This document shows, piece after piece, positions 31,101 through 48,300 of a DNA stretch of 64,000 nt. A program made the translations under genes and the position numbers. This DNA is from Macrostomum lignano (taxonomy: Eukaryota). Positions within the stretch are counted from its first letter, which is position 1; each line of letters begins with the position of its first letter. The stretch is from NCBI GenBank assembly GCA_002269645.1, contig NIVC01000647.1, forward strand, positions 186,001 to 250,000. Direction: 5' to 3'. The notes beneath the pieces are model-generated. The model did not search any database. It was not told the origin of the DNA and saw nothing but the letters and a program-made list of their open reading frames with translations.

Positions 31101-32654
31101 TTCAGCTCTGATCCTCAATAAATCCCGAAAATATCCCAGTTCAGCTCTGATCCTCAATAAATCCCGAAAATATCCCAGTTCAGCTCTGATCCTCAATAAA
31201 TCCCGAAAATATCCCAGTTCAGCTGTGATCCTCAATAAATCTTGAAAATATCCCAGTTCAGCTCTGATCCTCAATAAATCTTGAAAATATCCCAGTTCAG
31301 CTCTGATCCTCAATAAATCCCGAAAATATCCCAGTTCAGCTCTGATCCTCAATAAATCCCGAAAATATCCCAGTTCAGCTCTGATCCTCAATAAATCCCG
31401 AAAATATCCCAGTTCAGCTCTGATCCTCAATAAATCCCGAAAATATCCCAGTTCAGCTCTGATCCTCAATAAATCCCGAAAATATCCCAGCTCAGCTCTG
31501 ATCCTCAATAAATCCCGAAAATATCCCAGCTCAGCTCTGATCCTCAATAAATCCCGAAAATATCCCAGTTCAGCTCTGATCCTCAATAAATCCCGAAAAT
31601 ATCGCAGTTCAGCTCTGATTCTCAATAAATCCCGAAAATATCCCAGTTCAGCTCTGATCCTCAATAAATCCCGAAAATATCGCAGTTCAGCTCTGATTCT
31701 CAATAAATCCCGAAAATATCGCAGTTCAGCTCTGATCCTCAATAAATCCCGAAAATATCGCAGTTCAGCTCTGATTCTCAATAAAGCCCGAAAATATCCC
31801 AGTTCAGCTCTGATCCTCAATAAATCTTGAAAATATCTCAGTTCAGCTCTGATCCTCAATAAATCCCGAAAATATCCCAGTTCAGCTCTGATCCTCAATA
31901 AATCCCGAAAATATCCCAGTTCAGCTCTGATCCTCAATAAATCCCGAAAATATCCCAGTTCAGCTCTGATCCTCAATAAATCCCGAAAATATCCCAGTTC
32001 AGCTCTGATCCTCAATAAATCCCGAAAATATCCCAGTTCAGCTCTGATCCTCAATAAATCCCGAAAATATCCCAGCTCTGCCGTAATCTCCGAAACTTCC
32101 TTAATATCCCAGCAATGCAGATTTTCCCATCTACTTAACTATCCAAATATGCATTACCCTCATATATTCCCAACTCAATCCAGATCCTCAAATTCTGAAT
32201 CACATCCCCCACTTGGCAGATCCGCATGGGCACAGTGCCAGACCGCGGCGGCCGAGCCTGGGAGCTGGAGCCGCCTCCGCCCGAGATGCCGGCTTTCAGA
32301 CAGCGCGAGGCCGGCGGCGGCGACCATCGCGGTGGCGGCCGCGGCGGCGGCGGAGGCGGTCGCGGAAGAGGCGGTGGAGGTCGCGGCGGCGACAGCGGCG
32401 GGGGTTGGGGAGGCGGTGGCGGCGGCTGGCAGCAGCAGCAGCAACAGCAGCAAGGATTTGTATTCATGCCAGACCAGCATTACCATCAGCAGCAGCAGTT
32501 CACTTTCCAGCCAAGTAGTCAATACGAGTTTCAGCCGCAGATGCATCAGGGCCAGCAGAATTATCAACAGACTGGATATCGAGGCGGCGGCGGTGGCCGC
32601 GGTGGCGGCGGCGGTCGCGGCGGTCGCGGCTATCGAGGCGGCGGCAGGCGATAA
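28111..32654 (+). CDS. FAM98: FAM98 family protein with C-terminal RGG/Gly-rich tail (tRNA ligase complex-associated), 464 aa
   Basis: Exons 28111-28654, 29282-29697, 32220-32654 (phases 1, 0). Motifs ELTGFLREYGCPY, LQFLATEVQAA, EYGTRRRLLLDRLDATISSFFWSDR, MGTVPDRGGR, PPEMPAF, RGG repeats. Confidence 0.93.
28742..29232. repeat. 23-bp minisatellite TTCTCGCTGTCCGATTCTACCCG and degenerate derivatives (FAM98 intron 1)
   Basis: Direct reading. Confidence 0.95.
29750..32080. repeat. 39-bp minisatellite, about 60 copies (FAM98 intron 2)
   Basis: Unit TCCTCAATAAATCCCGAAAATATCCCAGTTCAGCTCTGA; accounts for the RIRAELGYFRDLL antisense ORFs. Confidence 0.97.
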
Positions 32655-32787
32655 CTTATCTCTAAGAGAATATTAGAGTCAGTGACATTAAAAAGTGAGA
32701 ATCCAGAAACCAGTAATCAACTTTTCTCAGATCAAACCTCATGCCCACGGGCCCAGTGTGGGCGTTACGCTACCTGTCTGTCTACAC

Positions 32788-33267
32788 CAGGGGTCGGCAA
32801 ACTTTGGCCTGCTAAGCCTCTCTATCCGGCCCTCGGGTCCTTTGAAAATTCGCAATAGCAATCCGGCCTGCTCAGGGTTTGTGTCTTTTTTCTCCTTTTT
32901 CTCCACTCCCCTCCTGTCTCATCTCCCCCTCTCTCTCTCATCTCTTCTCCCCTCTCTTATCTCCTCTCTCATCTCCCTTTCTCCCCCTCTGTCCTCTCCC
33001 TCTCCTCTCTTCTCCACTCCCCTCTCCCTTCTCTCATCCCCCTTCTTTTCTCTCCCTTTCTTTCTCTCCTCTCACCTCTCCTCTCTCATCTTCTCTCCTC
33101 TCCTTTCTTATCTCCCCCCTCTCTCTCATCTCCCCTCTCCCCTCTCTCATCTCCTTTTTTTCCTCTCCCTTTCTCTCCCATCTCCTCTCCCTTCCTCTCT
33201 CCCCTCCTCTCCTCTCTGGCTCTCAGTCATGCGCAGATCCTACATCTGGCCCTTAAAGTTGTCTCTG
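32788..33267 (+). mobile_element. hAT-type MITE with internal CT-rich tract (right end degenerate)
   Basis: Left TIR CAGGGGTCGGCAAACTT; subterminal sequence shared with 38203-38657. Confidence 0.65.
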
Positions 33268-33772
33268 CAGTAGTTTGCACTACACCATCATCCAAATTCG
33301 AGAGAGAATCTGAAGAGAAAACTTGAGCCCAGTGATTTTCCTCTGTTTACTTTTTTCAATTAGCTGGCTACTGTCAGTTCATTCAGTAGCCAGGACTCTT
33401 CTACCTGTTTTACTAGCCAAGGTATGCTGAAGTGGCCCATCTGGGTATACTGTCTATCGTATCAGTGGTCTTTATTGGATTGCTCTGGTAGAGGGATAGA
33501 TGCTTATGTTTATTGAATGCCCCCAGTGCGTTTCAGCGATATTGATTTCACCTGCTTTGCTGATTTTCTTTCTTGATTATTTTCCTTTCAATTTGTTAGT
33601 TGCTTTTTTCAAAGAGTGCAGCCTTGCTTGCTGTCTCCCCAGCACAGGGATTAATTGTGTCTTGGTTGTACTTTTGCCGTGTTTTTGTTCTAGTTTTAAT
33701 TTAACTCAGCTTTGTATATTTTAGCTTAGTATACATTCTAGCAGGTGTATCTATTTATCAGGTCTACCGCCG

Positions 33773-33774
<2 letters not shown>

Positions 33775-33808
<34 letters not shown>

Positions 33809-33900
33809 CCTACCTGCCTGTACGTCTGTATCTACCTGTCTGTCTGTCTGTCTGACTGTCTGTCTGTGTGTCTGTCTGTCTGTCTGTCTGTCTGTCTTAG

Positions 33901-33995
<95 letters not shown>

Positions 33996-33996
33996 G

Positions 33997-34047
<51 letters not shown>

Positions 34048-34054
34048 GCCTGCC

Positions 34055-34097
<43 letters not shown>
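33775..34097. repeat. (GTCT)n microsatellite
   Basis: Direct reading. Confidence 0.95.
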
Positions 34098-34098
<1 letters not shown>

Positions 34099-34439
34099 CC
34101 TATTCCTTTACGTTGCCCCGTTACTATAAATTGACAATTTAACCTTGGCCTGCATTTGCCGGTTTATCAAATTGGTTATATGTAAAATCGAAAATGAAAA
34201 TACAACAGTTTGAATTATCAATTTGATATCAGTTAAAAACCGCTGTGCTTTTACTACGGTGTCTGTTTTTTGTGCCAAAAAATTGTTTTTAGTGCTCTTT
34301 TAAACTATTTTCTCCTTTTTCATTAGTGCCTACTCTCTAAGTTCTGTCGTTAGTAGTGCAACTTGCAAATGTCAGATTACGAATAAGACAGACCTAAAAA
34401 CAGAGAGCCACAGACAGCAGACAAATATGCAAAGCAGAA

Positions 34440-34448
34440 ACTGACAGG

Positions 34449-34502
<54 letters not shown>

Positions 34503-35108
34503 GGCAGAGACAGACAGGTAGACAGGTAGGCAGAGACAGACAGGCAGATAGACAGACAGAGACAGACAGAGTCTGACAGACACACAGGCAAGCAGGTAGA
34601 CAGACAGGCAAAGAAAGGTAGACAGGCAGGCAGAGACAGACAGGCAGATAGACAGACAGAGACAGACAGAGTCTGACAGACACACAGGCAAGCAGGTAGA
34701 CAGACGGCAAAGACAGGTAGACAGGCAGATAGACAGACAGACAGGTAGATACAGACGTACAGGCAGGTAGACAGACAGACAGACAGGTAGACAAACATAC
34801 AGGCAGGTAGGTAGACAGACAGACAGATAGACAGGCAGAGACAGGCAGGCAGATAGACAGACAGACAGGTAGGTAGACAGACAGAGACAGACAGACACAC
34901 AGGCAAGCAGGTAGACAGACAGACAGACAGGCAGGCAGGTAGGCAGAGACAGGTAGACAGGTAGACAGACGTACAGGCAGGCAGGTAGGTAGACAGACAG
35001 ACTGACAGGTAGACAGATAGGTAGACAGACATACAGGCAGGTGGGTAGACAGACATACAGGCAGGTGGGTAGACAGACAGACAGGTAGACAGACAAGCAG
35101 GCAAGCAA
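34440..35108. repeat. (AGAC/AGGC/AGGT)n complex microsatellite, inverted relative to 33775-34097
   Basis: Direct reading. Confidence 0.95.
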
Positions 35109-35170
35109 GGAAATATTCGATCTCTTACACAAAAATGCCATAAATTGCAGCCCGAATCCGGACCGCAGCC

Positions 35171-35359
35171 ATGCCAGCCTGGAGAGACGCGGGAATCAAC
35201 TACATCCGCTACTCGGCCCTGTGCGCCAAGGTGGTGCGCCACTGCCTCAAGCCAGAGCTGCAGCGCGAAGCCATGAAACGGGAAGGCAGCACTGTGAAAG
35301 CCTTCCTGTGGAAGGACGGCAAACCGTCTGAGGTTCCGAGGAAGGTCGTGCAGGCTTGA
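35171..35359 (+). CDS. ATP5F1E: Mitochondrial ATP synthase F1 subunit epsilon, 62 aa
   Basis: [29 protein letters not shown] matches the WRxAGlsYirYsxIcAxvvRxaLK epsilon signature; AATAAA overlaps the stop (35359-35364). Confidence 0.93.
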
Positions 35360-35861
35360 ATAAAGTTTGACAGCCATGGACTGGCGAGTTTAATTAGCCT
35401 TAGTGTTTAGCTACTAAACTATTATTTTGTTACTGTATGTAAAGCCTACTTGCTAGCTCTCTATACACAATGCTATTTACGCAGTCGTTAAGAATCCATT
35501 TGATTAAGAACGAGTTGTTTCGAACGGCACTTTTTCACTCCCACTCGTAACAGTCGCAATTCAGTTAAGAACGACCCAACAAATGTTCCTATATCTGTGC
35601 TACTGTAATTTGCTATCGAGCTAAATATATCAACACTATATAAACAAACTGTTTGGAAAATTAAACTATAATGACTAGTTGGTGACAAGTTCTCTGTAGA
35701 GTGCAACTTTTCTTTTATTGAAGCAGTTTTGTGTTTTCTTATCAGTATCAGATTATCTAAAGAGTTAAAGTTTGTCCCATTAGATAAGGCGCAATATTCC
35801 CATATTAATAGAAGATAATATAGCTTTTTGCAGCCCATTTGGGCTCACACGCATTGGAATT

Positions 35862-36551
35862 TTATCCAAGAAATGGAGCTTTTGTCTATGGTAGCAAGGC
35901 TGGCACCGCAGCGGTTAATTTCGTCTAACAGGCATCAATTTGGTTGTTTCACTGTACCAACACAAGAGATGACGTCAAAAATGCAATCTGCTCAACTATA
36001 ACAAAAGGAAAAAAGAGCATTCTAGTTTGACCAAAACTCCGCTTCGATCACGAGTCCATGGCGTTTGTTTGACATTCTGTCATATGGTACACGATTCTGG
36101 GGCTGATCGCAATGAAGCATTGTTTAGCAATTTGAAGATCATTATTTGTAGTTTTTATGCATTACAATTCATTGTTTGTTTGCCATTCAACCTAGAGAGA
36201 AGGGTTATGAATACTCGTACACTCTACCATAGACATCAAAGTTTTCTTCAAGTTTTTTTCACACCCCTGTCTGTCTGTAGAATCGTCAAACAGAAAAACA
36301 ATGCAAAGAATCAGCGGTCGCAGCACGTGACAACGATTTGTCCATGGCTCGCGCCTACCGGCGCTCGCCAGACAATCGTTGTCACGCACTGGGACCGCTG
36401 ATTATTTATCCATTGCTTCCGTTCTCACTGTTTGCGACAGTCATGTCTAAATTAGAATCTAGGAGTGAAACTACAGAGCCGCTATGGACCACATTAAATG
36501 CCGCTGTGCCAGCCTTGCTACCATAAACAAAAGCTACATTACTTTGGCTAA
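35862..36551. mobile_element. Inverted-repeat-bounded element (about 50-bp arms), MITE-like
   Basis: AGCTTTTGT(C/T)TATGGTAGCAAGGCTGGCAC at 35877 and reverse-complemented at about 36505-36535; no clear TSD. Confidence 0.55.
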
Positions 36552-36865
36552 TATTTGGCTTTGCTTGATTATTACGAGATTCAATCGCAGTTTGCAAGTG
36601 TTGGGCTTAGTTAATAACACTATTTTATGTTAGTTATTAACACTACTTGCAATAGTTTGTTTGTTGTATAATATGACCTGAATCTGTTTTTTATTGGCTC
36701 ATCGCTTGGATTTGTCTTCTATGGGCTAAACCGGTGTCAATTTTAAGTGTACCTCGTACTTGTCTTACAGTTGCATATTACTCATTCACCTTTGTTAATT
36801 AAGCGATCAAATATCTTTAAAAAGCTTGTCTTCTAAAAGCAAATAGCTGACCCTTGATTCCGCAG

Positions 36866-37459
36866 CTGCCCGTACGGTTAATTTTGCGCCTCTGCCCAGC
36901 GCAGCAGCAGCAGCGCCTTGTTGCCTGCAGTCGGTCCTTAGTTACCCTTGCTAAGCAACCGTCGCAGCGCGTCCGACATGACTGTCTGGTTCTCTCAGAA
37001 TCGCTGAAGCGGAGTCAGATTAGGTTCCGCCACCTGTGCACCGATGGCAAAGGCGGCGGCAGTCTTCCAGCTGCATTTGAGAGCGCCAACTTAGCTGACT
37101 CGACAGATATTGTTCAGGATGCCAAGCGTCAGATGGGCATCGTGTTCACCTGCAAAGTGTGCAGCACTCGGCAGGCGAGAAGTTTCTCGCGAGTAGCCTA
37201 CGATCGCGGAGTGGTGATTATTCGGTGTGACGGCTGTCAGAATTTGCACCTGATTGCAGATAATCTGCACTGGTTCGATCACGTCGGCGGCCGAAATGTG
37301 GAACAGATTCTGCGCGAACGCGGCGAAGAGGTGCGACGGCTCAGCGGCTGCTTGGATCTGCAGCTAGGAAACAAAATCGAAAGTGATAGTGGCGTCAAGT
37401 GTGAAACTGAAGCTGGAAGCGGAAGTGCAGGTTCAGATGGAAGCGGAAGCAGTGGTTAG
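36866..37459 (+). CDS. DNLZ: DNL-type zinc finger protein (Hep1/Zim17/Tim15), mitochondrial Hsp70 escort protein; start codon not genomically encoded at this exon
   Basis: zf-DNL domain FTCKVCSTRQARSFSRVAYDRGVVIIRCDGCQNLHLIADNLHWF...RNVEQILRERGE; Arg-rich presequence-like N-terminus; ORF opens after a phase-0 acceptor (CTGAC...CCGCAG| at 36865). Confidence 0.9.
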   Translation: MPVRLILRLCPAQQQQRLVACSRSLVTLAKQPSQRVRHDCLVLSESLKRSQIRFRHLCTDGKGGGSLPAAFESANLADSTDIVQDAKRQMGIVFTCKVCSTRQARSFSRVAYDRGVVIIRCDGCQNLHLIADNLHWFDHVGGRNVEQILRERGEEVRRLSGCLDLQLGNKIESDSGVKCETEAGSGSAGSDGSGSSG

Positions 37460-38202
37460 TTTTCCATGGGCTTCCTCTTGTCCCTGGCGACTCATTGTAA
37501 TTACAAAAAAATACTTAAGGAAATATTTTGCTGCCCTAAATTTTATTGCTCATTTGTTTAAATTTGAGGACGAAAAAATATATTTAGTATAAAGCCTGTT
37601 GCTTATGTGGAGAATTTTCTCTGGAATATCCTTTGTTTATTGTTAAATTTACTTATTTTAATTGGACGGAATGCTAAGTATCCGATGTAGACAATGTCTT
37701 CAACGCATGTAGGGAGTGGCGATGGAAACTGGATGCTGGAAGCTTGTGTGTGGAACGTAGACATTGTCGTAAAGGCCATGTCACAGTTGGGATACATGAG
37801 GTCGGTTTCTGTGGCAGGTACTTCTGCCATATAAATTGCTGTAGTTTTTCAGCAATTCTTCCCACAGGCTCCATGGCTTTTAGTCGTTGAAGAGATGCTG
37901 CAGCATACTGAAAAAGCCCTCCAATTCGTAGAAGCACAGTATCGAGCGCCACTCTTGGTACGAACCTCTTATTATCAACCAATTGGTCAGATGTTGAGGC
38001 CATTGGGCTCGGATTTCTTGTTCCATGCTCAAGAAGCCTCCACCATCCATTGCTACTTCTTCTTTGCTCCCTCCGGAACGACAAATTTAATTGTTTCTAC
38101 CAGTCATCGAAGTCTATGTTTGTTAATTGGATTGAATTGGTGCTTGCAAACTTACAAAATTTAGTTCTCTTAAAGAGTCAAAACTCAAACCTCGCCCTAG
38201 AA

Positions 38203-38358
38203 CAGGGGTCGGAGGGGTCGGAAAGCTCTGGCCCGCGGGCCACATGCGGCTCGCAAAGCCTCTATCCGGCCCTCGGGTCTTTTGAAAGTTCACAATAGCA
38301 ATCCAGCCCGCTCAATGTTTGTATCTCTTCTCAACGTAGCAGCGTCTACATGTAATCA

Positions 38359-38444
<86 letters not shown>

Positions 38445-38657
38445 CTTTCTCCTCTCGTCTCGTCTCGTCTCGTCTCATCTCCCCTCTCCTCTCTTCTCTG
38501 TCCTTTTCTCTCCTCTCTCCTTTCTCCTCTTCTCTCCACTCTTCTCTTATTTCTCCTAGCTCTCCTTTATTCTCTCTCCTCTCTCCCCTCATCCGGCCCG
38601 CAGTCATTCCCTAGGTTCTCTATCTGGCCCTGAGGTAAAAAAGTTTGCTGACCGCTG
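38203..38657 (+). mobile_element. hAT (Charlie-like) MITE containing (CT)n
   Basis: TIRs CAGGGGTCGG... / ...AAGTTTGCTGACCGCTG, 8-bp TSD CCCTAGAA (38195-38202, 38658-38665). Confidence 0.88.
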
Positions 38658-38810
38658 CCCTAGAAGCAGATAATGAGTGTTTGATTGGCCACAGACATAC
38701 TGCTTGGGCTACTGCCACTGCTTTGCGAAGGGAGCAATCAGCTTGAACTTTTCGATCTTATATTTTGACCCTATTTAATTGACATTTTAATCGTACGGCT
38801 GTGCCCGGTA

Positions 38811-39059
38811 ATGGCCCTGTTGATCGCAACGCTAGCTTTAGTCACGCTGTTCAGTCACTACCTCGAGCTGGATTACGGCGACCCGACTAAGCAGCAGTTC
38901 GTCGATGACATTCAAGGCGACACGAATCAGCCCTGCGAAGACGACGTTGACTGCTTTTTCCCCTACGAGATTTGCAACAGTTCCAAACGATGCTTCAGAC
39001 TATTCAAAATTCCTATTCTGTATAAGACTGCTTATGTTGGAATGTTTGGCAATCCGTAA
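38811..39059 (+). CDS. Candidate small secreted or membrane-anchored Cys-rich peptide (82 aa; possibly spliced at 39055)
   Basis: Hydrophobic N-terminus MALLIATLALVTLF, C-x5-C-x6-C-x5-C motif (CEDDVDCFFPYEICNSSKRC), GC3-rich codons against AT-rich flanks; no family recognised. Confidence 0.4.
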   Translation: MALLIATLALVTLFSHYLELDYGDPTKQQFVDDIQGDTNQPCEDDVDCFFPYEICNSSKRCFRLFKIPILYKTAYVGMFGNP

Positions 39060-40069
39060 GAATGTGCTACTAGTACTGCGAGATGTCCGATAAATAACTC
39101 AAACTAAATTCCGATGAGCATGTTGAATTATCATCAAATGGAGTTGTTGTTTGCTTATTTTTCAAGATGCGCTGTGAAGGATTTCTATGCGTAAGAGCGT
39201 TGCAGAATACCTTGAAAGGTTAGCATGCATCTCCATGATCCTAAAAATGGGTGCCTGCATCGTGCAGTTATGCAGTTATGTGTTCCTTGCCTTTGATCCC
39301 CCGTTTTCATGTTTAAGCTGTGCAGCATTCACAAACATCAGGTTCTCTGACAGCCCTGGACCAGATGAAGGTGCAGCGTTTATAATAGTCATTAGGTCTT
39401 GCATCCAGTGTTTATCCTGCCTTAAAAAGACTTAGATTCTATACTTTATCACTCTCTTTATACTTTATCATTCATATCCTTTTAGTATCCTTTTAGACAT
39501 ATCAGTGACTCTTCCGAAGACCCTTGACAACCAGCCCACAAAAAACCGTGGACACACTTAGCAGTACGAATAGGCGCGTGGGTAGCAACACCTCTTGTTG
39601 GCCTCTTGCTACTTTTAGTTCTATAAAAGGGTAGCTACAACTATATTCACAGACATCGAATAAAACAGTATCACCTTGAGTTCAGGTGGGTGTCATCTAT
39701 CGCAGCTTATTTCGGCTTTACCGAATGGGGAACAATGCTTTCCAATTCTATTAAAAGTGTAGGCTAATGGATATAAGCATAGATTTATATATGCACTCTA
39801 GCACATGTACGAGTATGTTAAATTTTATCAGTCTGCTAAAACTGTTCGAGGCTCAGTATTGGCCTTAAGGGCACAAGCCAGTGTCTGCCTTCTGAAGCTC
39901 TGCTTTCTGAGATATCATAAAGTACATGTGTAGTACCAACAAAGATAAGAAATTTCAGCAACTTACTTTTCAGCCAGCATATAAACCTAGAAAACTTTAA
40001 CCAAAAACATGAATTTCGTATCTAGACTAGAGAGTGTACCCCCGGAATTGAAACAGCTTATACAGCAGC

Positions 40070-41420
40070 ATGACGAGTCAAGAAAGGAGTCCAGGCTACA
40101 CTGGCGAACGGCACCCCGAGCTGTTCAAGGAGCGGCCGGCCAAAGGCAACAAGCCAGGCCAGCTGAGTCGGGCACAGCTGGACGAATTCTACACCCGAGG
40201 CTTCACCCTGGTGCGAGACTTCTTCGCCAAAGAGGAGCTGGACGCCCTGAAGGTTGACATTGTGGCGAAAGTCTCGGAGCTGGCAGACAAACTGTACAAT
40301 GCCAGCAAGATTAAAGGTGATTTGACTGGCGATGCTAAAATAATGATGGCGGTTGTGGTGGTATTGATGTTCCGTGACTGTCGGTATGATCAAAGGCAGT
40401 TGGTTTAAACCCTCTGTCGGTATGATCAAAGCAGTTAGTTTTCGAGATCAGCCGATATCAGCAACTCAGCAGGTTTACATTGTGTTAATCCTTGATTAGC
40501 TGTTTGAAAGAAACTCGTGTCGCTCTACCCACGTTAGACAAACACGAGGGCCTCGGATTCTACCACCGCCTTTGCGCCATCGAGCGCGACTTCCCCGGTG
40601 CCAACATAGTGCTGCTCAAAATGACGCCCAACCTGCCGCCCTCGTTCCGGGCCATTGCCGCCCACGAGCGAATGCTGAACCTCCTCGAGGACATCGTCGG
40701 CCCGAACATCTCCTTCAACCCGGTGTGGAACCTGCGCACCAAAACGCCAAACAACGCCGCCAGCACGGTGCCCTGGCATCAAGACAGCGGCTACTTCGAC
40801 GTGGAGTCCTACAACGCGCTCATCGTCACCGCCTGGGTGCCGCTGCTGGACGCCAACGAGCAGAACGGCACCCTGCAGATGGTGCCGGGCTGCCACCGGG
40901 ACGGCTACATCGCCAAGCACACCTGCTGCGCCGGGCCCACCTGGTACATTGACCTGGACGAGGACATCATCGAGAAGGAGTTTGGCGTGGACATGGCCAA
41001 GGACCCCGTAACTCTCGACGTGCCGTACGGCTCCTTCCTGCTGTTCAACAACTTCACGCCGCACCGGAGCCTCAACAACCGCTCGGACGTGGTGCGCTGG
41101 TCCATCGACTTCCGCTGGCAGCGCACGGGCACCCCGGCTGGGTTGTTCGGCCTCAAGCCCACCTGTGAGGTGCGCCGCGACGGGGAGCCGAACTTCCGGC
41201 CAGACTGGGTTCCAGCGAAGTTGCTGCTAGCTTCGACTCTGGGGACCGGAACAGAGCCCAGCTGGAGTCCATGGCCAGGGACGATAGCGCAGCCGACGAG
41301 TTCAGCATCCTCATGTCCGGTCCTTGGATGAAGAAATGGGAGATCGTCAACCACAACAAGCACACGGACGAGTTTGAGAAGAACTCAGAGGACTGGAAAC
41401 TCGAGATGCTGCATGGCTGA
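40070..41420 (+). CDS. Phytanoyl-CoA dioxygenase (PhyH)-domain 2OG-Fe(II) dioxygenase, with an apparent 1-nt frameshift near 41208
   Basis: Exons 40070-40316 and 40538-41420; LSxxQLDEFYTRGF, PWHQDSGY (HxD), TAWVPLLDANEQNGTLQMVPGCH, TPHRS (distal His), RWSIDFRW. The C-terminal ...GPWMKKWEIVNHNKHT lies in a shifted frame; one extra base gives 376 aa. Confidence 0.85.
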
Positions 41421-42332
41421 TGATAGATTTTTCAGACTATTTTTACTCGAGATTGAACTTTTATGTTAAGGCTCGAAAGCACAGAAAGACGAATTGTAAC
41501 GTTCGCTGAGAAAATATCAATATTTTCAATTCGGAGAGATATTTGAAACTGCAAAATTAACCACGTTTGACTTTTATTTTCTTTGAAGGATCACTCTACT
41601 ATGCCAGTGTGGCATGAAAATTCACAGCATAAAAATAAATACTATACAGAGCTTCCCTATTTGCGCCTTGCAGTTAGGTGGTATATGATCGAGTGTGTCA
41701 ACAAAATGTGAACAAGTTGTTTAGAAGTGCGTGTTGGCGCGAATGTAGTAGCACATGCAGGCATGGCCACATGAAAGCACTTTGCAGTTGCGGCCTCTTC
41801 AGGAACCACGTATCGAATTTCAAGCCTTTTGGGCGCAATTTTTCACTTGGTGGTCAATTGTCCAATAATCTGGTTTTTATTGTTGATAAATCGAGGTTTT
41901 ATCATACATATACCATCTATCAAGCAAAATGAGGATGGATCAGACATTTGACATGAGGATAAAATTGCAGCAGATCCAGATCGAATGTTGTCAAATCATG
42001 TTCTAACAATAATATTACAGTTGTGTATAGCGGACCAGTTTTCTATTTTGAAAACATGCTGCCAAATGAAAATTTTACACGTGGTAACCTGATAAACAAA
42101 TTGTATTAGCAAATATTTTAGCAAAAGAAAAAACTATCATTCTTGCAGTAAAACAAATGTAAAATTGTAGAAGAAAAATTATAATTAGTATAAAAGTGAG
42201 AAGTATTGCACAAAATAGTATGATTCGAATCTGATTTTCTACGTTGCCATTTTTTAAAATTTAATATCCCTTATCAGGCATCGATCACTCTTGCACATAG
42301 GATTTTGATATCCGAAATTCTTAATATTAAAT

Positions 42333-45300
42333 ATGAGAGTTTCCTTCTTTGCCATCGTTTTTTTGGTATGTATGCCTTTGGCACTATGCACCACTAAAAG
42401 AACTCTTGTGCTTCTAGAGAATCTTTCGTTCCGTGAATCTTTCTCTCAATATTTCAAGTTGCTCCGAGGTAAGCTTTTATTTTTGAAAGTATATCGACAA
42501 AGTTTAATCGAAATGAGTGTTAGATTTTTCTTTTTTGTCAGTCAAACATACTGATTATATCTTCTGAAGAGTTAGGCCTATGAGAACTAATGGAATGTTT
42601 TTACATGTAATTTTGCTTGCAGCCAAAATAGGCCTGTTAGGCATAATAATTGAAATTGGCTCTAAAATAAATCAACAGGCTTGCCTATCATGCCTATGAA
42701 GAAAAATTGAAGTTGAAGTTGAAGTTAGGCTCTGTTTATCCCAGGCATAAATAAATACTTTCAGTCAGTGGTGGATCTAGAGTTTCATTTGAGGGGGGGC
42801 AGTCAAGTTTGGGGCGCCAACATGAGTATAAGGGGATGGGGTGCCAATTTTGAAGCTAGGGGGGCGCAAAAAATGCATGTAGGGGGGGGCAAAAAATGGG
42901 GCACAAAAAGGCATTTAGAGGCAAAAAATCAAGTTTAGGAGGTGCAAATTTAGGTTTTTGGGGGGCACAATATATTTTGGGAGGGAGGCAGCCATCCCTA
43001 CCCCCCTAAATCTGCCATGTAATAATAGGTCACTTGTCATCTAATATAAGAAGTTGCCAAAGCACTTCTCTGGTCTAGGTAGAATCAGCATAAGAGAAAC
43101 TAATTGTCATACATTAGAAGTAGGCCTAGTCTTTTGTATTCTTTCGATTTCTTAGAGAAATCCTTTATTTTTAGATTTTTTAGAATATCTTTTTTATATT
43201 AATGGCAATTATAATTGGTTATATTAGATATATTCGATAATTATAACTCTTTTTTCTTAGAATATTAATTATAGAGTTGCATTAAAACAAATAGAACAAC
43301 GACTAGTCACATGATCAATGTCCAATAAAAATTTGGCATTATATAGCTTTGTGACAATAGTTGCTCTAATGCACTGAGGTATATGCCTCCTTAACAATCT
43401 AGCCTTCTTCAAACTAGTTTGTATTAGTGATACCAGTGTGTGACAAGGATTATCTAGTGAGTACCAATAAGTGTTTTGCCTATAAACCATTTTGGCCATG
43501 GACATTTTGCCTCCAAACCATTTTGCCCATAAAGGGTTTCAGTCATGGACTATTTCTAAACTTTACAGTTTTAAACTTTGTGTTTTGATTCTCAATTTTG
43601 GTGACAAATCTTATTATTTTAGTATTTCTAGCTTTACTTTGCTTGTAACTAAAACCTTTTCTCACCCTCTGATTGTTCAATTTGGCTTTAATTGCTGCAC
43701 TTTCAAAAGGAATGACTTTTTAAAAAAACTCAATAATTCACAATTGTAATAAACAATATTATAATACACACAATTGTTGTAGCAACAATTCAGATAATAT
43801 TTTATTACATTTTAAAACAAAAAATTAGCATGAAAAAAGAAAATAAAGACATATATGGCTGTATCTCTAAATTATATAATTACCATTTTAACCAAAATGC
43901 CTATAGCCAAACTGGTTTATGGATAAAACAGATTTTTTGCAAAATGGTCTAGGGGCAAAATATCCATGGCTAAAATGGTTTGGGTGGGAGTGAAACAACC
44001 AGAATTTGCCGCAACCACTGATTCTTTGCATTGTTTTTCTATTTGAGTATCCTACAAACAAAGCATTATTTGTAGTAATGTATTATTCTGTATAAAATGT
44101 GCAAACAAAAATTGTCAAATTGCTAAACAATGCTATAGTCTAAAACAACTTATAGTATTTTTTATATGCTATATTTTTATATTTATTTATAAAGACGTAA
44201 ACTATTTGTGTTCTACCACCAACTATTGATATAGTTATAGCTTGGAAAGCAGTTTTATAGGCATATTTGTAATTTTTATAGGTATACATTTTATCATATA
44301 GTTATAATACTATAGCCATATTCATAATTATAGCTAAATAAAAAATTCTTTGTTGATAATATTATTAAATAATTTTTCCATTCATTATTTTAATCTATTA
44401 TACTTTGTTGGCTTGTCATTGATCTATGCTGCTATAAAAATAGATTTGTTATAGTACCTATATACTTTGGGTGTCTGGATAATCATGCAACTTGGTAAAT
44501 AGCACAGAAACTAGTGATTCACTGATAGCAAAACTGCACCAGTCTGTAACATAGCATCCCCCAGTACCAATGACAGCGTGGCAGTATTCCAGAAGACTAT
44601 GACATTTGGCGGTGAAGGCATTTTTGTCTAGGCTCTTCACTCAGTGCAACGCAGTGGCCTCAACCTTGGAATGGTCAGCAATCTATCTGTGGCACAGGTT
44701 GTTCTTCATCAGCTAAATAGGAAGCAATTGCACAAGTTGAGGTCTGGACTATATGGACTTTGAAACAGTATTCAGATGCTAGTCTTTTCAAAGTAGTCCC
44801 ATACAGTCCTGCTTGCATGTAGTCGGGCATTGTCCCACTGCCACAGAACTTTGTTTAGGTGAATTAGCTTCAAACACAAGCAGCACCACAAATCAGGCTC
44901 AGTTTGTTTCATAAACTGGATGATGCAGATGCATTCACTATTAACTGTCTTGTGTGGGGCTGTGGCAGAGATGGAAAATTGCTTGTTCAGAGTGAATGCC
45001 ACAAGTAGCGTTGTTTTGCAAATGCTGACATCCGTAGGAGGATCTTGGAATTGCTTGTACCAACAGAAGATTGTTGCTTTGTTGGGTGCATCCTCCCCAT
45101 GCGCAGCAAGTTCTGGGTGACAGTCAGCAGTAATGATCTTCAGTTTAAAGTGAGTCAATGTGTAGAATTATAACTATCCATTGCTGCCAGCAAAGCTTAG
45201 AAAAAAATTATACACTGGGGTGGAGGCACTGGGGTGGAGGCTTACTCAAAAATTTATGCCAATGCTGCTTCTAATGCATGTCTATGGCTGAAATTGCATA

Positions 45301-48300
45301 GTCTGGCAGCTGATGTTTTGAACTGTTATATGTTGCAGCATGCTTGGGTGCAACCTAGGGATTCACCTGGCTGTTTCTATTGGCAACACACACATAAGTT
45401 GCTATTGGACAGAATAGTAGTCATGTGACAAACATGTGAATTGCATGTGACTGCTCTCAGCCAATAGTGACTTACATGTGTGTTGCCAATAGAAATGGCC
45501 AAGTGAATCCCTAGGTTGCGCATGTATGTGCTGCAGCAGCCATTTTGGATTCCAATTGCTTTTCGAGATATATCTTGAGTCACATGATTACCCAGATGCC
45601 CAAAGTATTTTACACTTTACTTATAGTTCAAAGTTTAAAAGCTATAGAAACCTATAATTGTAGTAGGGTACTTTCTTTAATAATAATATCCCCACTACTG
45701 TCACCAGCTGTTGTAGGGATTTTCTAACTCCTATTTTCTAGTTTCTCAAAGCTGCCACCAAAAGCTGTCAAATTTCTATATTCTCTTAGTTAATGTACTT
45801 TTGCATGTACTTTATTTATGGGTAGCGTGAATAGTTCTATTCTTATATTGGTAGCATCTATCTATCTATTGGTAGTGGTTGTACATTCACTGTACTCTTT
45901 GGCCTGAGTGGTCTAATGACACTGTCTATTCCTACTATCTCTCAGTCCTAGGCATTCCCGGGATCAGAGGGTCATAGCCTTATGCAGTTTTCCCTGCCCT
46001 GAGGCAACTTCTCTTGCCTTGAGGCGGCTTTATACACTCTATAGGGTTACTGCCCTGAGGCAATTCTTGCTCCTTAGTGGTTTTCTAATTCCCAATAAGG
46101 GGCTTAATACTCTAGAAAATGAATAAGTCAATTTGAACAACTGTTTTTAAAGATTTAGTAAAGACTTATTAAACTTTGCTTGCAATTAGAAGCTCACGGC
46201 GAGTTGCTTTGCTTGGCCTGCTCGTGGCTTCTATTTATACTAAGATTTCTCACCATTTAAAACAAAAACTAATTTGTGAGAATATTTTTTTAAATCACAA
46301 CAATTAAACAAAAATTAATGTTTTAGCATGAATTTGAAAAAATGGTTTTCCAAGAAACATAGTATGCAACATGAGTAATTTTACAACATTTATACAGTAT
46401 TATTAATGGCCCTTACTCATTATAAAAATTTAAGAATTAATCTTTGGACTAAAGTATGCAGCCTTTAGATGTGCCATGCAAGAGCAATAGCTAAGTTGTT
46501 GATTGTATGTCTGCCTATTGGAACAAGTATAATTAGTTATTGTTATTATTTGTTTTTGTTATTATTCCTACTGGCTTTATTTCAGTAAGTAGAAAAAGGC
46601 TTATTAGAATTTAATATAGACTTACTCATTTTAGAGAAAAAATCAACCTATTTAAGCTAAAAAACGATTCTTTCCTTGCATTGGTGCATTCATAACATTG
46701 AAACAAAAATTTCTAATATCATCCTTTTATTAAAGCCTTTATTATTTAAAAGATCTAGAAATAATCATTACACTTACATATTAGTTTATTTAACATTTCT
46801 AATTGTAGATAATGGCTTTGAGCTGTCATTCCGGACTGCTGATGACTCTACCCTTACTTTGACTAAATATGGCGAGTTTCTCTATGACAACTTGATCATC
46901 TTTGCCCCTTCTATTCGAGGTAATTTATTGTTTTGCACTCTGAAATTAGTCAATTTTATATTGTTTATGCAATTTTTCTCTGAATATCATTGTTAAAGTC
47001 TGAATATCATTGTCATCTAGAGGTCACCCAAGCTAGCAGATCTCATCTAGAGGTCACCCAAGCTAGCAGATCTCATCTAGAGGTCACCCAAGCTAGCAGA
47101 TCTCCTCTAGAGGTCACCCAAGCTAGCAGATCTCATCTAGAGGTCACCCAAGCTAGCAGATCTCATCTAGAGGTCACCCAAGCTAGCAGATCTCATCTAG
47201 AGGTCACCCAAGCTAGCAGATCTCATCTAGAGGTCACCCAAGCTAGCAGATCTCATCTAGAGGTCACCCAAGCTTGCAGATCTCATCTAGAGGTCACCCC
47301 AGACAGCAGCTCACCAACATGCTCCCACCACGCCCCACAATGGCAGAGTTCGGCGGCAAGCTGAACACTCCCGCCATCACCGACTTCGTTGACAACGGCG
47401 GCAACCTACTAGTGGCTGGCAGCTCCAGCATCGGCGAGGCCGTGCGCGAACTCGCGGCCGAATGCGGAGTCGAATACGACGAAGAGAAAACCGCCCTGAT
47501 CGACCATCTGCGCTACGACGCCAAGGACACTGGCCGGCACACTCTGGTCATCGCGGACAAGCGCAACCTGCTGGACGCTCCCATCATTATCGGGGACAAT
47601 GCCAAGGCCAGCTTAAAGCCGCTGCTCTATCGCGGAGTTGCCATGACAGCCGATTCCGCTAATCCCCTAGTGCTGCCTATTCTGCACGCCGACAGCACCG
47701 CCTACAGTTTCAATCCCGAGCGATCGATTGACGATTATCCCAATGCTGTTGGCCAGGCCGCTCTGCTCATTGCCGGCCTGCAGGCTCGCAACAATGCCCG
47801 GGCCGTTTTTGTTGGCTCGCTGGAATTCTTCTCCGACGAATTCTTCGGAGCTGCCGTGGAGCCCGCCGACGCCGCCGCTTCTGGTATTGCCACTTCCGAG
47901 GTTTGTAGTCCTGCCTTTTTTATGGGTCTACCTGACTGCCTGCCCTTTATCTAAGCTACCTAACTCAGATTTTCTCCCGTTGACCAGGCCCTCTCTACCT
48001 TCTGGATCCGCTCTCTACCTTCTGGATCCGCTCTCTACCTCCAGATCTGCTCTCTACCTCCAGATCTGCTCTCTACCTCCAGATCTGCTCTCTACCTTCT
48101 GAATCCGCTCTCTACCTTCTAGATCCGCTCTCTACCTTCTGAATCCGCTCTCTACCCTCTAGATCCACTTTCTACCTCCAGCTCCAGATCCGCTCTCTAC
48201 CCTCTAGATCCGCTCTCTACTCTCCAAATCCAGAAATCCTCTCTCTACCCCCAGATTCTCTTTCTACCCTCCAGATCCTCTCTCTACCTCCAGGTCTACT

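Follow-up and report, generated by a model that had tools for sequence, protein, structure and literature searches.

A DNLZ gene of Macrostomum lignano that probably takes its initiator AUG from the spliced leader

The window analyzed here is a 64,000-nt stretch of the Macrostomum lignano assembly Mlig_3_7 (GCA_002269645.1; contig NIVC01000647.1, positions 186,001 to 250,000 of the forward strand). It carries on its + strand a single-exon coding sequence of the DNLZ/Hep1 type, consisting of 197 genome-encoded codons and a TAG (36866-37459, stop at 37457-37459), whose translation from 36866 is an exact match to a public protein of 197 aa; Met1 is proposed to come from the spliced leader (SL). 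Residues 92-154 of the 197 match the Pfam zf-DNL zinc finger (PF05180) with 95.3 bits against a cutoff of 27 (E = 2.1e-27), placing the domain at 37139-37327 of the + strand, with CKVC at residue 97, CDGC at 122 and DNL at 133 in the numbering of the 198-aa product that includes Met1. The window protein also matches the solved core domain of yeast Tim15 (2E2Z chain A, E = 9.9e-15), and on these sequence grounds the gene name DNLZ, for the zf-DNL family of DNLZ/Hep1/Zim17/Tim15, is right. Proteins of this family reside in the mitochondrial matrix and keep mitochondrial Hsp70 soluble. Besides the three copies from M. lignano itself, our homology search matched just two proteins, both distant relatives. 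The window protein shares with DNLZ/Hep1/Zim17/Tim15 the zf-DNL domain, the two CxxC pairs, the DNL motif, the Tim15 similarity and an Arg/Leu/Ser-rich N-terminal extension, but differs from them in a start codon that appears not to be encoded in the gene, and its Gly/Ser-rich C-terminal tail has no counterpart in the two retrieved relatives.

Upstream, the DNLZ frame is closed by an in-frame TGA at 36848-36850 (+ strand), which is also present in both paralog loci, and from 36851 it is free of stops up to the terminal TAG. Overlapping the TGA is CTGAC (36847-36851, + strand), a candidate branch point judged by its letters, which lies 15 nt 5' of a splice acceptor and reads CTGAAC in the paralogs. 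The acceptor itself is a pyrimidine-rich tract followed by CAG (36851-36865, + strand, AG at 36864-36865), with the sequence CCCTTGATTCCGCAG and pyrimidines at 9 of the 12 bases before the CAG; it is the sole AG in phase 0, it makes the CTG at 36866 the first exon codon, and it is the proposed site of SL trans-splicing. The open DNLZ frame contains no in-frame ATG upstream of 37133-37135 (+ strand), which encodes residue 90 at the edge of the zf-DNL domain and would give a rival product of 108 aa that lacks the presequence, while three out-of-frame ATGs (36978, 37044 and 37119) precede it. Over 36851-37132 the remaining two frames hold five stops each, and the DNLZ frame was kept open in 3.9% of shuffles of this 282-nt segment, that is, across the 94 codons before the first ATG. 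Base composition switches at 36866: G+C is 34% over the preceding 300 nt and 57% over the N-terminal coding stretch. All that the first-pass annotation had read from the letters, namely the TGA closure, the CTGAC, the phase-0 acceptor at 36865 and the position of the first in-frame ATG, was borne out, and so was its statement that a start at 37133 would drop 89 residues. A whole-window Rfam scan and a tRNA scan gave no matches. The SL sequence was absent from the window when up to three mismatches were allowed, so the window holds no SL RNA gene.

The 89 codons before the ATG (36866-37132, + strand) encode an extension that resembles a mitochondrial presequence in its composition. Acidic residues are absent from its first 39 positions, the first 38 sum to a net charge of +7, and there is one TOM20-type VRLIL motif; an amphipathic-helix test by hydrophobic moment scored no better than shuffles. 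The earlier proposal that the N-terminus looks like a presequence thus stands for charge, the lack of acidic residues and VRLIL, and draws no support from the hydrophobic moment. A presequence is expected here because zf-DNL proteins act on mitochondrial Hsp70 in the matrix, and in the two distant relatives the N-terminus is extended to a similar length by sequence that is likewise presequence-like. One relative (P0002, 118 aa) looked like a truncated form, a reading that we discarded: it had been called from an internal TTG, and its contig holds a real upstream ATG and no SL. In that contig (L004 123-563, Logan SRR25867668) the upstream ATG opens a longer DNLZ-like protein whose presequence-like N-terminus begins with MLRSILSYRYALTILK. 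We infer that the N-terminus of the window protein directs mitochondrial import.

M. lignano uses a single 35-nt SL, CGGTCTCTTACTGCGAAGACTCAATTTATTGCATG, which ends in TTGCATG, and its top acceptor motif is YTNCAG; about 30% of its genes are trans-spliced (PMC8629364). AUG ends all flatworm SLs, and work on Macrostomum has pointed to the ATG of the SL as a start codon for translation. In the Mlig_3_7 annotation, transcript 5' ends were cut at peaks of SL-trimmed reads by the TBONE pipeline and ORFs were called by TransDecoder (PMC5730564). When we joined the published SL to 36866 computationally, the AUG fell at nt 33-35 and the product was MLPVR..., 198 aa, which reproduces the fusion proposed from the sequence alone and is supported by the annotated 5' end and by SL-tail bases in the paralogs. 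The GenBank DNLZ coding sequence is 5'-partial and its first base is exactly 36866, right after the acceptor AG. A 5'-partial ORF at this position implies that the transcript model begins within 2 nt of 36866, since any model long enough to take in the TGA at 36848 would have been given a Met start and left no 5'-partial ORF. All three DNLZ copies are annotated as 5'-partial, with L or V and no Met as their first residue. An exact look-up of the 198-aa M-LPVR product in a transcript-derived collection returned no record.

Two features of the acceptors count against joining of the SL at 36866. The window acceptor CCGCAG fits YTNCAG only in part, having C instead of T at -5, and 95 nt further upstream lies a stronger one, CTTGTCTTACAG (TTACAG; 36759-36770, + strand, AG at 36769-36770), which fits the motif, is identical in three of three copies and is a possible alternative SL site. 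An SL-AUG joined at TTACAG would open only a 21-codon out-of-frame uORF and would not reach the presequence, and no annotated 5' end was found at this acceptor. The suggestion that an unspliced or differently spliced form yields an untargeted protein is logical but finds no support: joining at TTACAG makes the uORF alone, and the annotation has no such 5' end.

About 1.5 kb upstream of DNLZ and in the same orientation lies ATP5E (ATP synthase epsilon; 35142-35359, + strand), an order kept in three of three copies. Its SL acceptor is AAATTGCAG (AG at 35149-35150), its exon runs from 35151, and its ATG and stop are at 35171 and 35357-35359; the 62-aa protein starts at this ATG, and the poly(A) signal (TGAATAAA) shares bases with its stop codon. 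The annotated ATP5E coding sequence is 5'-partial as well, beginning 2 nt after the perfect TTGCAG acceptor (35150|35151) with the real ATG 20 nt on. Since it too sits beside an acceptor, partial coding-sequence starts in the Mlig_3_7 annotation appear to mark SL sites. In three cases the annotated coding sequence starts 6 nt downstream of the exon start (DNLZ g3, L003 3995-4001; ATP5E g1, L002 2306; ATP5E g3, L003 2300). No splice signal was found at these shifted starts, and the shifts mean that annotation boundaries are not clean independent evidence at each locus. At ATP5E the SL-AUG falls outside the coding frame and begins a 42-codon uORF that overlaps the real start, so ribosomes must often bypass it.

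The published criterion for an M. lignano operon asks for a downstream gene that is SL trans-spliced and lies, after adjustment for repeats, no more than 1 kb from an upstream gene in the same orientation (PMC8629364). The raw ATP5E-DNLZ distance, which is not repeat-adjusted, is 1506 nt and includes a segment of about 290 nt with inverted repeats that is specific to the window copy. This segment (36114-36407) is found in the spacer of the window copy only and contains a 34-nt inverted repeat (36305-36338 and 36374-36407, 88% complementary), and hence looks like a small insertion of the foldback or MITE-like kind. Within 28105-47459 lies an unbroken run of six or more annotated genes, all on the + strand, encoding a 466-aa protein, ATP5E, DNLZ, an 82-aa protein, PhyH and OST48; the g1 copy of the 466-aa protein matches DUF2465, and five of these genes are found again, in this order, in one or both of the paralogous contigs, neither of which has a PhyH call. 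This run is possibly an operon-like arrangement. Over 29742-32075 a 39-nt unit is repeated in tandem about 60 times at 95% identity, with TCTTG and TCCCG variants that vary from one paralog contig to the other. Just upstream of ATP5E, tetranucleotide arrays of TGTC and of GACA run for long stretches in opposite orientation (33775-34098 and 34443-35103), and a (CT)n array is found at about 38360-38440.

Two further DNLZ copies lie on other M. lignano contigs and are listed at NCBI as 'hypothetical protein BOX15_Mlig020231g1, partial' and 'hypothetical protein BOX15_Mlig020231g3, partial'. A three-locus alignment revealed that the copies differ exactly at the junction, which reads TTCCGCAG|CTG (CCGCAG|CTG) in the window, TTCCGATG|CTG (CCGATG|CTG) in g1 (contig L002, NIVC01002631.1) and TTCCCATG|CTG (CCCATG|CTG) in g3 (contig L003). 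The differing bases are contiguous, with -2 as the last of them, in a block that reads ATG in g1 and CATG in g3, and each one equals the SL tail; the comparison covers the three M. lignano copies. The Mlig_3_7 assembly was polished by Pilon with STAR-mapped RNA-seq reads, and SL-bearing reads, whose SL tails mismatch the genome just 5' of the exon, could in this way overwrite the reference. The ATP5E acceptor serves as a control. It reads GAATTGCAG|CCC in the window and in the third contig (g3), and GAATGCATG|CCC in g1 (L002 2290-2300, equivalent to window 35142-35150), where TTGCAG has become TGCATG: four bases are changed, the last six match the SL tail, and no AG is left. As this ATG has no coding role and the splice site is destroyed, selection for a start codon cannot explain the overwrite.

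Such replacements are rare in the surrounding sequence. In the cleanly aligned parts of a 26-kb three-way alignment, multi-base ATG-for-AG replacements occur only at two annotated 5' ends, those of DNLZ and ATP5E, and outside tandem repeats mismatch blocks of at least 3 nt occur only at the same two junctions. Other columns with ATG against AG (42000, 46814 and elsewhere) were rejected as footprints, being single substitutions or lying in poorly aligned sequence. TGCATG is found 15 and 20 times on the two strands of the window against about 16 expected per strand, which is chance level, and an SL-tail 9-mer, TATTGCATG, on the minus strand at 21040 runs into a stop within three codons and was taken as a chance match and not as an SL trace. 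The paralog ATGs are thus probably artefacts of RNA-seq polishing, footprints of reads that ran ...CAUG|CUGCCC; that the SL-tail bases in the paralog contigs report SL-bearing reads is what we infer from this origin. Whether genuine or artefact, the paralog ATGs give the same N-terminus, M-LPVR, in either reading.

Conservation between the copies is uneven. A 110-nt block upstream of the DNLZ exon (36736-36845, + strand, -130 to -20) has 1 difference in 110 positions against g1 and 3 in 110 against g3 (97-99% identical), and the whole DNLZ coding sequence is 99% identical between copies, while the farther flanks are 6-16% diverged with many indels (about 13% farther upstream). The block could act as a promoter or outron element, or else mark a tract of gene conversion. 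Within the exon, an A at +40 distinguishes g1 and a G at +190 the window copy. Synonymous divergence in the coding sequence is far below the divergence of the flanks, which could reflect gene conversion or homogenisation by the RNA-seq polishing.

Taken together, we favor, at a probability of roughly 80%, a single-exon DNLZ gene in the window that is SL trans-spliced at 36866, uses the SL-AUG as its initiator and yields a 198-aa protein with a mitochondrial presequence. Our initial reading was another one, in which the paralog ATGs are genuine: g1 and g3 would encode their Met conventionally, and in the window ATG would have turned into CAG, followed either by rescue through the SL-AUG, as a start-codon swap between homeologs, or by decay of a start-less duplicate. 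It draws on the in-frame ATG that both g1 and g3 carry directly 5' of the CTG and behind the shared in-frame TGA, on a further difference of the window copy at -16 that produces the better branch-like motif CTGAC, and on the redundant gene copies that M. lignano holds after duplication (PMC5730564). We downgraded it to an unlikely explanation because of the RNA-seq polishing and of the ATP5E junction, where an equivalent 4-nt overwrite in g1 serves no coding role and destroys the splice site; against it stand also the contiguity of the junction block, whose changed bases agree with the SL tail throughout, the additional C at -4 in g3 included, and the g1 annotation, which is 5'-partial from just after the ATG as if the ATG had been trimmed together with the SL.

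Three further explanations dispense with the SL as the source of the start. Initiation at the genomic ATG 37133, with the upstream frame as an untranslated leader of a 108-aa zinc-finger protein, has in its favor that this is the sole in-frame genomic ATG and that relative P0002 has Met at the corresponding position. We consider it highly improbable, given that the 94-codon frame before it would rarely stay open by chance while the other frames are closed, that coding-like G+C begins at 36866, and that the zf-DNL family is matrix-located and the relatives have N-terminal extensions; moreover, ribosomes that leak past the SL-AUG on the DNLZ mRNA would meet the three out-of-frame AUGs first, which argues against 37133 as a productive start. 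An mRNA that is not trans-spliced could instead be read from a near-cognate codon, as TTG 36854 and CTG 36866 both lie in frame downstream of the TGA, but the context is poor at both (C at -3, no G at +4), the annotated transcript begins at 36866 with no upstream extension, and scanning ribosomes would be caught by the upstream ATGs at 36627, 36673 and 36721, making this the most far-fetched of the explanations weighed. Finally, the CAG at 36865 could be the cis-splice acceptor of an unannotated upstream exon that supplies the ATG, since the acceptor fits both kinds of splicing and flatworms share acceptors between cis- and trans-splicing. This too is very unlikely: the annotated models are 5'-partial and lack an upstream exon in three of three copies, the 1.5 kb upstream hold a single ATG|GT, ATGGTACAC at 36084, which makes a poor donor and is ATGGTTCAC in the paralogs, and the junction footprints match the SL tail and not an upstream exon.

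Under the favored SL-AUG reading, the 35-nt SL (...UUGCAUG) would be joined at the CAG acceptor 36865|36866, giving a mature mRNA that consists of the SL followed by CUGCCC..., and its terminal AUG would be in phase and act as the initiator codon. The context of this AUG, UGCAUGC, is weak and counts against efficient use, yet ribosomes would be expected to start there. In the predicted product, M-LPVRLILRL..., 198 aa, some 60-90 N-terminal residues would serve as the mitochondrial presequence, followed by the zf-DNL zinc finger, the putative escort module for mtHsp70.

Initiation at the SL-AUG has been known in flatworms since 2006, and DNLZ is a further case of this known mechanism. In Schistosoma mansoni 28% of trans-spliced mRNAs have the SL-AUG in frame, and for more than 40 cDNAs it is the required initiator (Cheng, Cohen, Ndegwa & Davis 2006, J Biol Chem, cited through PMC12582326 and PMC9851317). 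DNLZ resembles these mRNAs in an SL that ends in AUG, an acceptor in phase with an AUG-less frame and an SL-AUG that would form codon 1; it differs in that M. lignano is a free-living macrostomorph and that the case is built on an annotation boundary and SL-tail footprints instead of cDNA and reporter assays. With the slORFs collected by slORFfinder (PMC9851317), DNLZ shares a start codon that exists only on the mature trans-spliced mRNA, as well as the 5'-partial coding sequence that gene callers working on the genome return, but its SL-AUG would head the main conserved protein and not a new or alternative ORF.

Trypanosoma brucei isoleucyl-tRNA synthetase is dually targeted by alternative trans-splicing. 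That enzyme is a precedent for the choice of SL acceptor deciding the presence of a presequence, whereas DNLZ is without a documented alternative SL site, and its TTACAG acceptor would lead to the short uORF and at best to a truncated protein.

Both SL junctions that we checked indicate that the Mlig_3_7 reference appears to carry SL-tail bases over real acceptors via RNA-seq polishing, and the assembly may contain such overwrites at many SL junctions. If they are general, false genomic ATGs and lost AG acceptors would follow, start-codon calls, acceptor-motif statistics and paralog comparisons would be distorted, and trans-splicing would at the same time leave a usable footprint in the assembly. 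Should the paralog ATGs be real instead, one genome would make the same M-LPVR protein through a genomic ATG and through an SL-donated AUG, a snapshot of a start-codon handover in which every step would be viable via an AAG intermediate that keeps an acceptor and is one mutation away from ATG. With the SL as the donor of the start, the DNLZ protein would be readable only from the trans-spliced mRNA, and the mitochondrial presequence of what is annotated as a partial hypothetical protein would exist only after SL addition.
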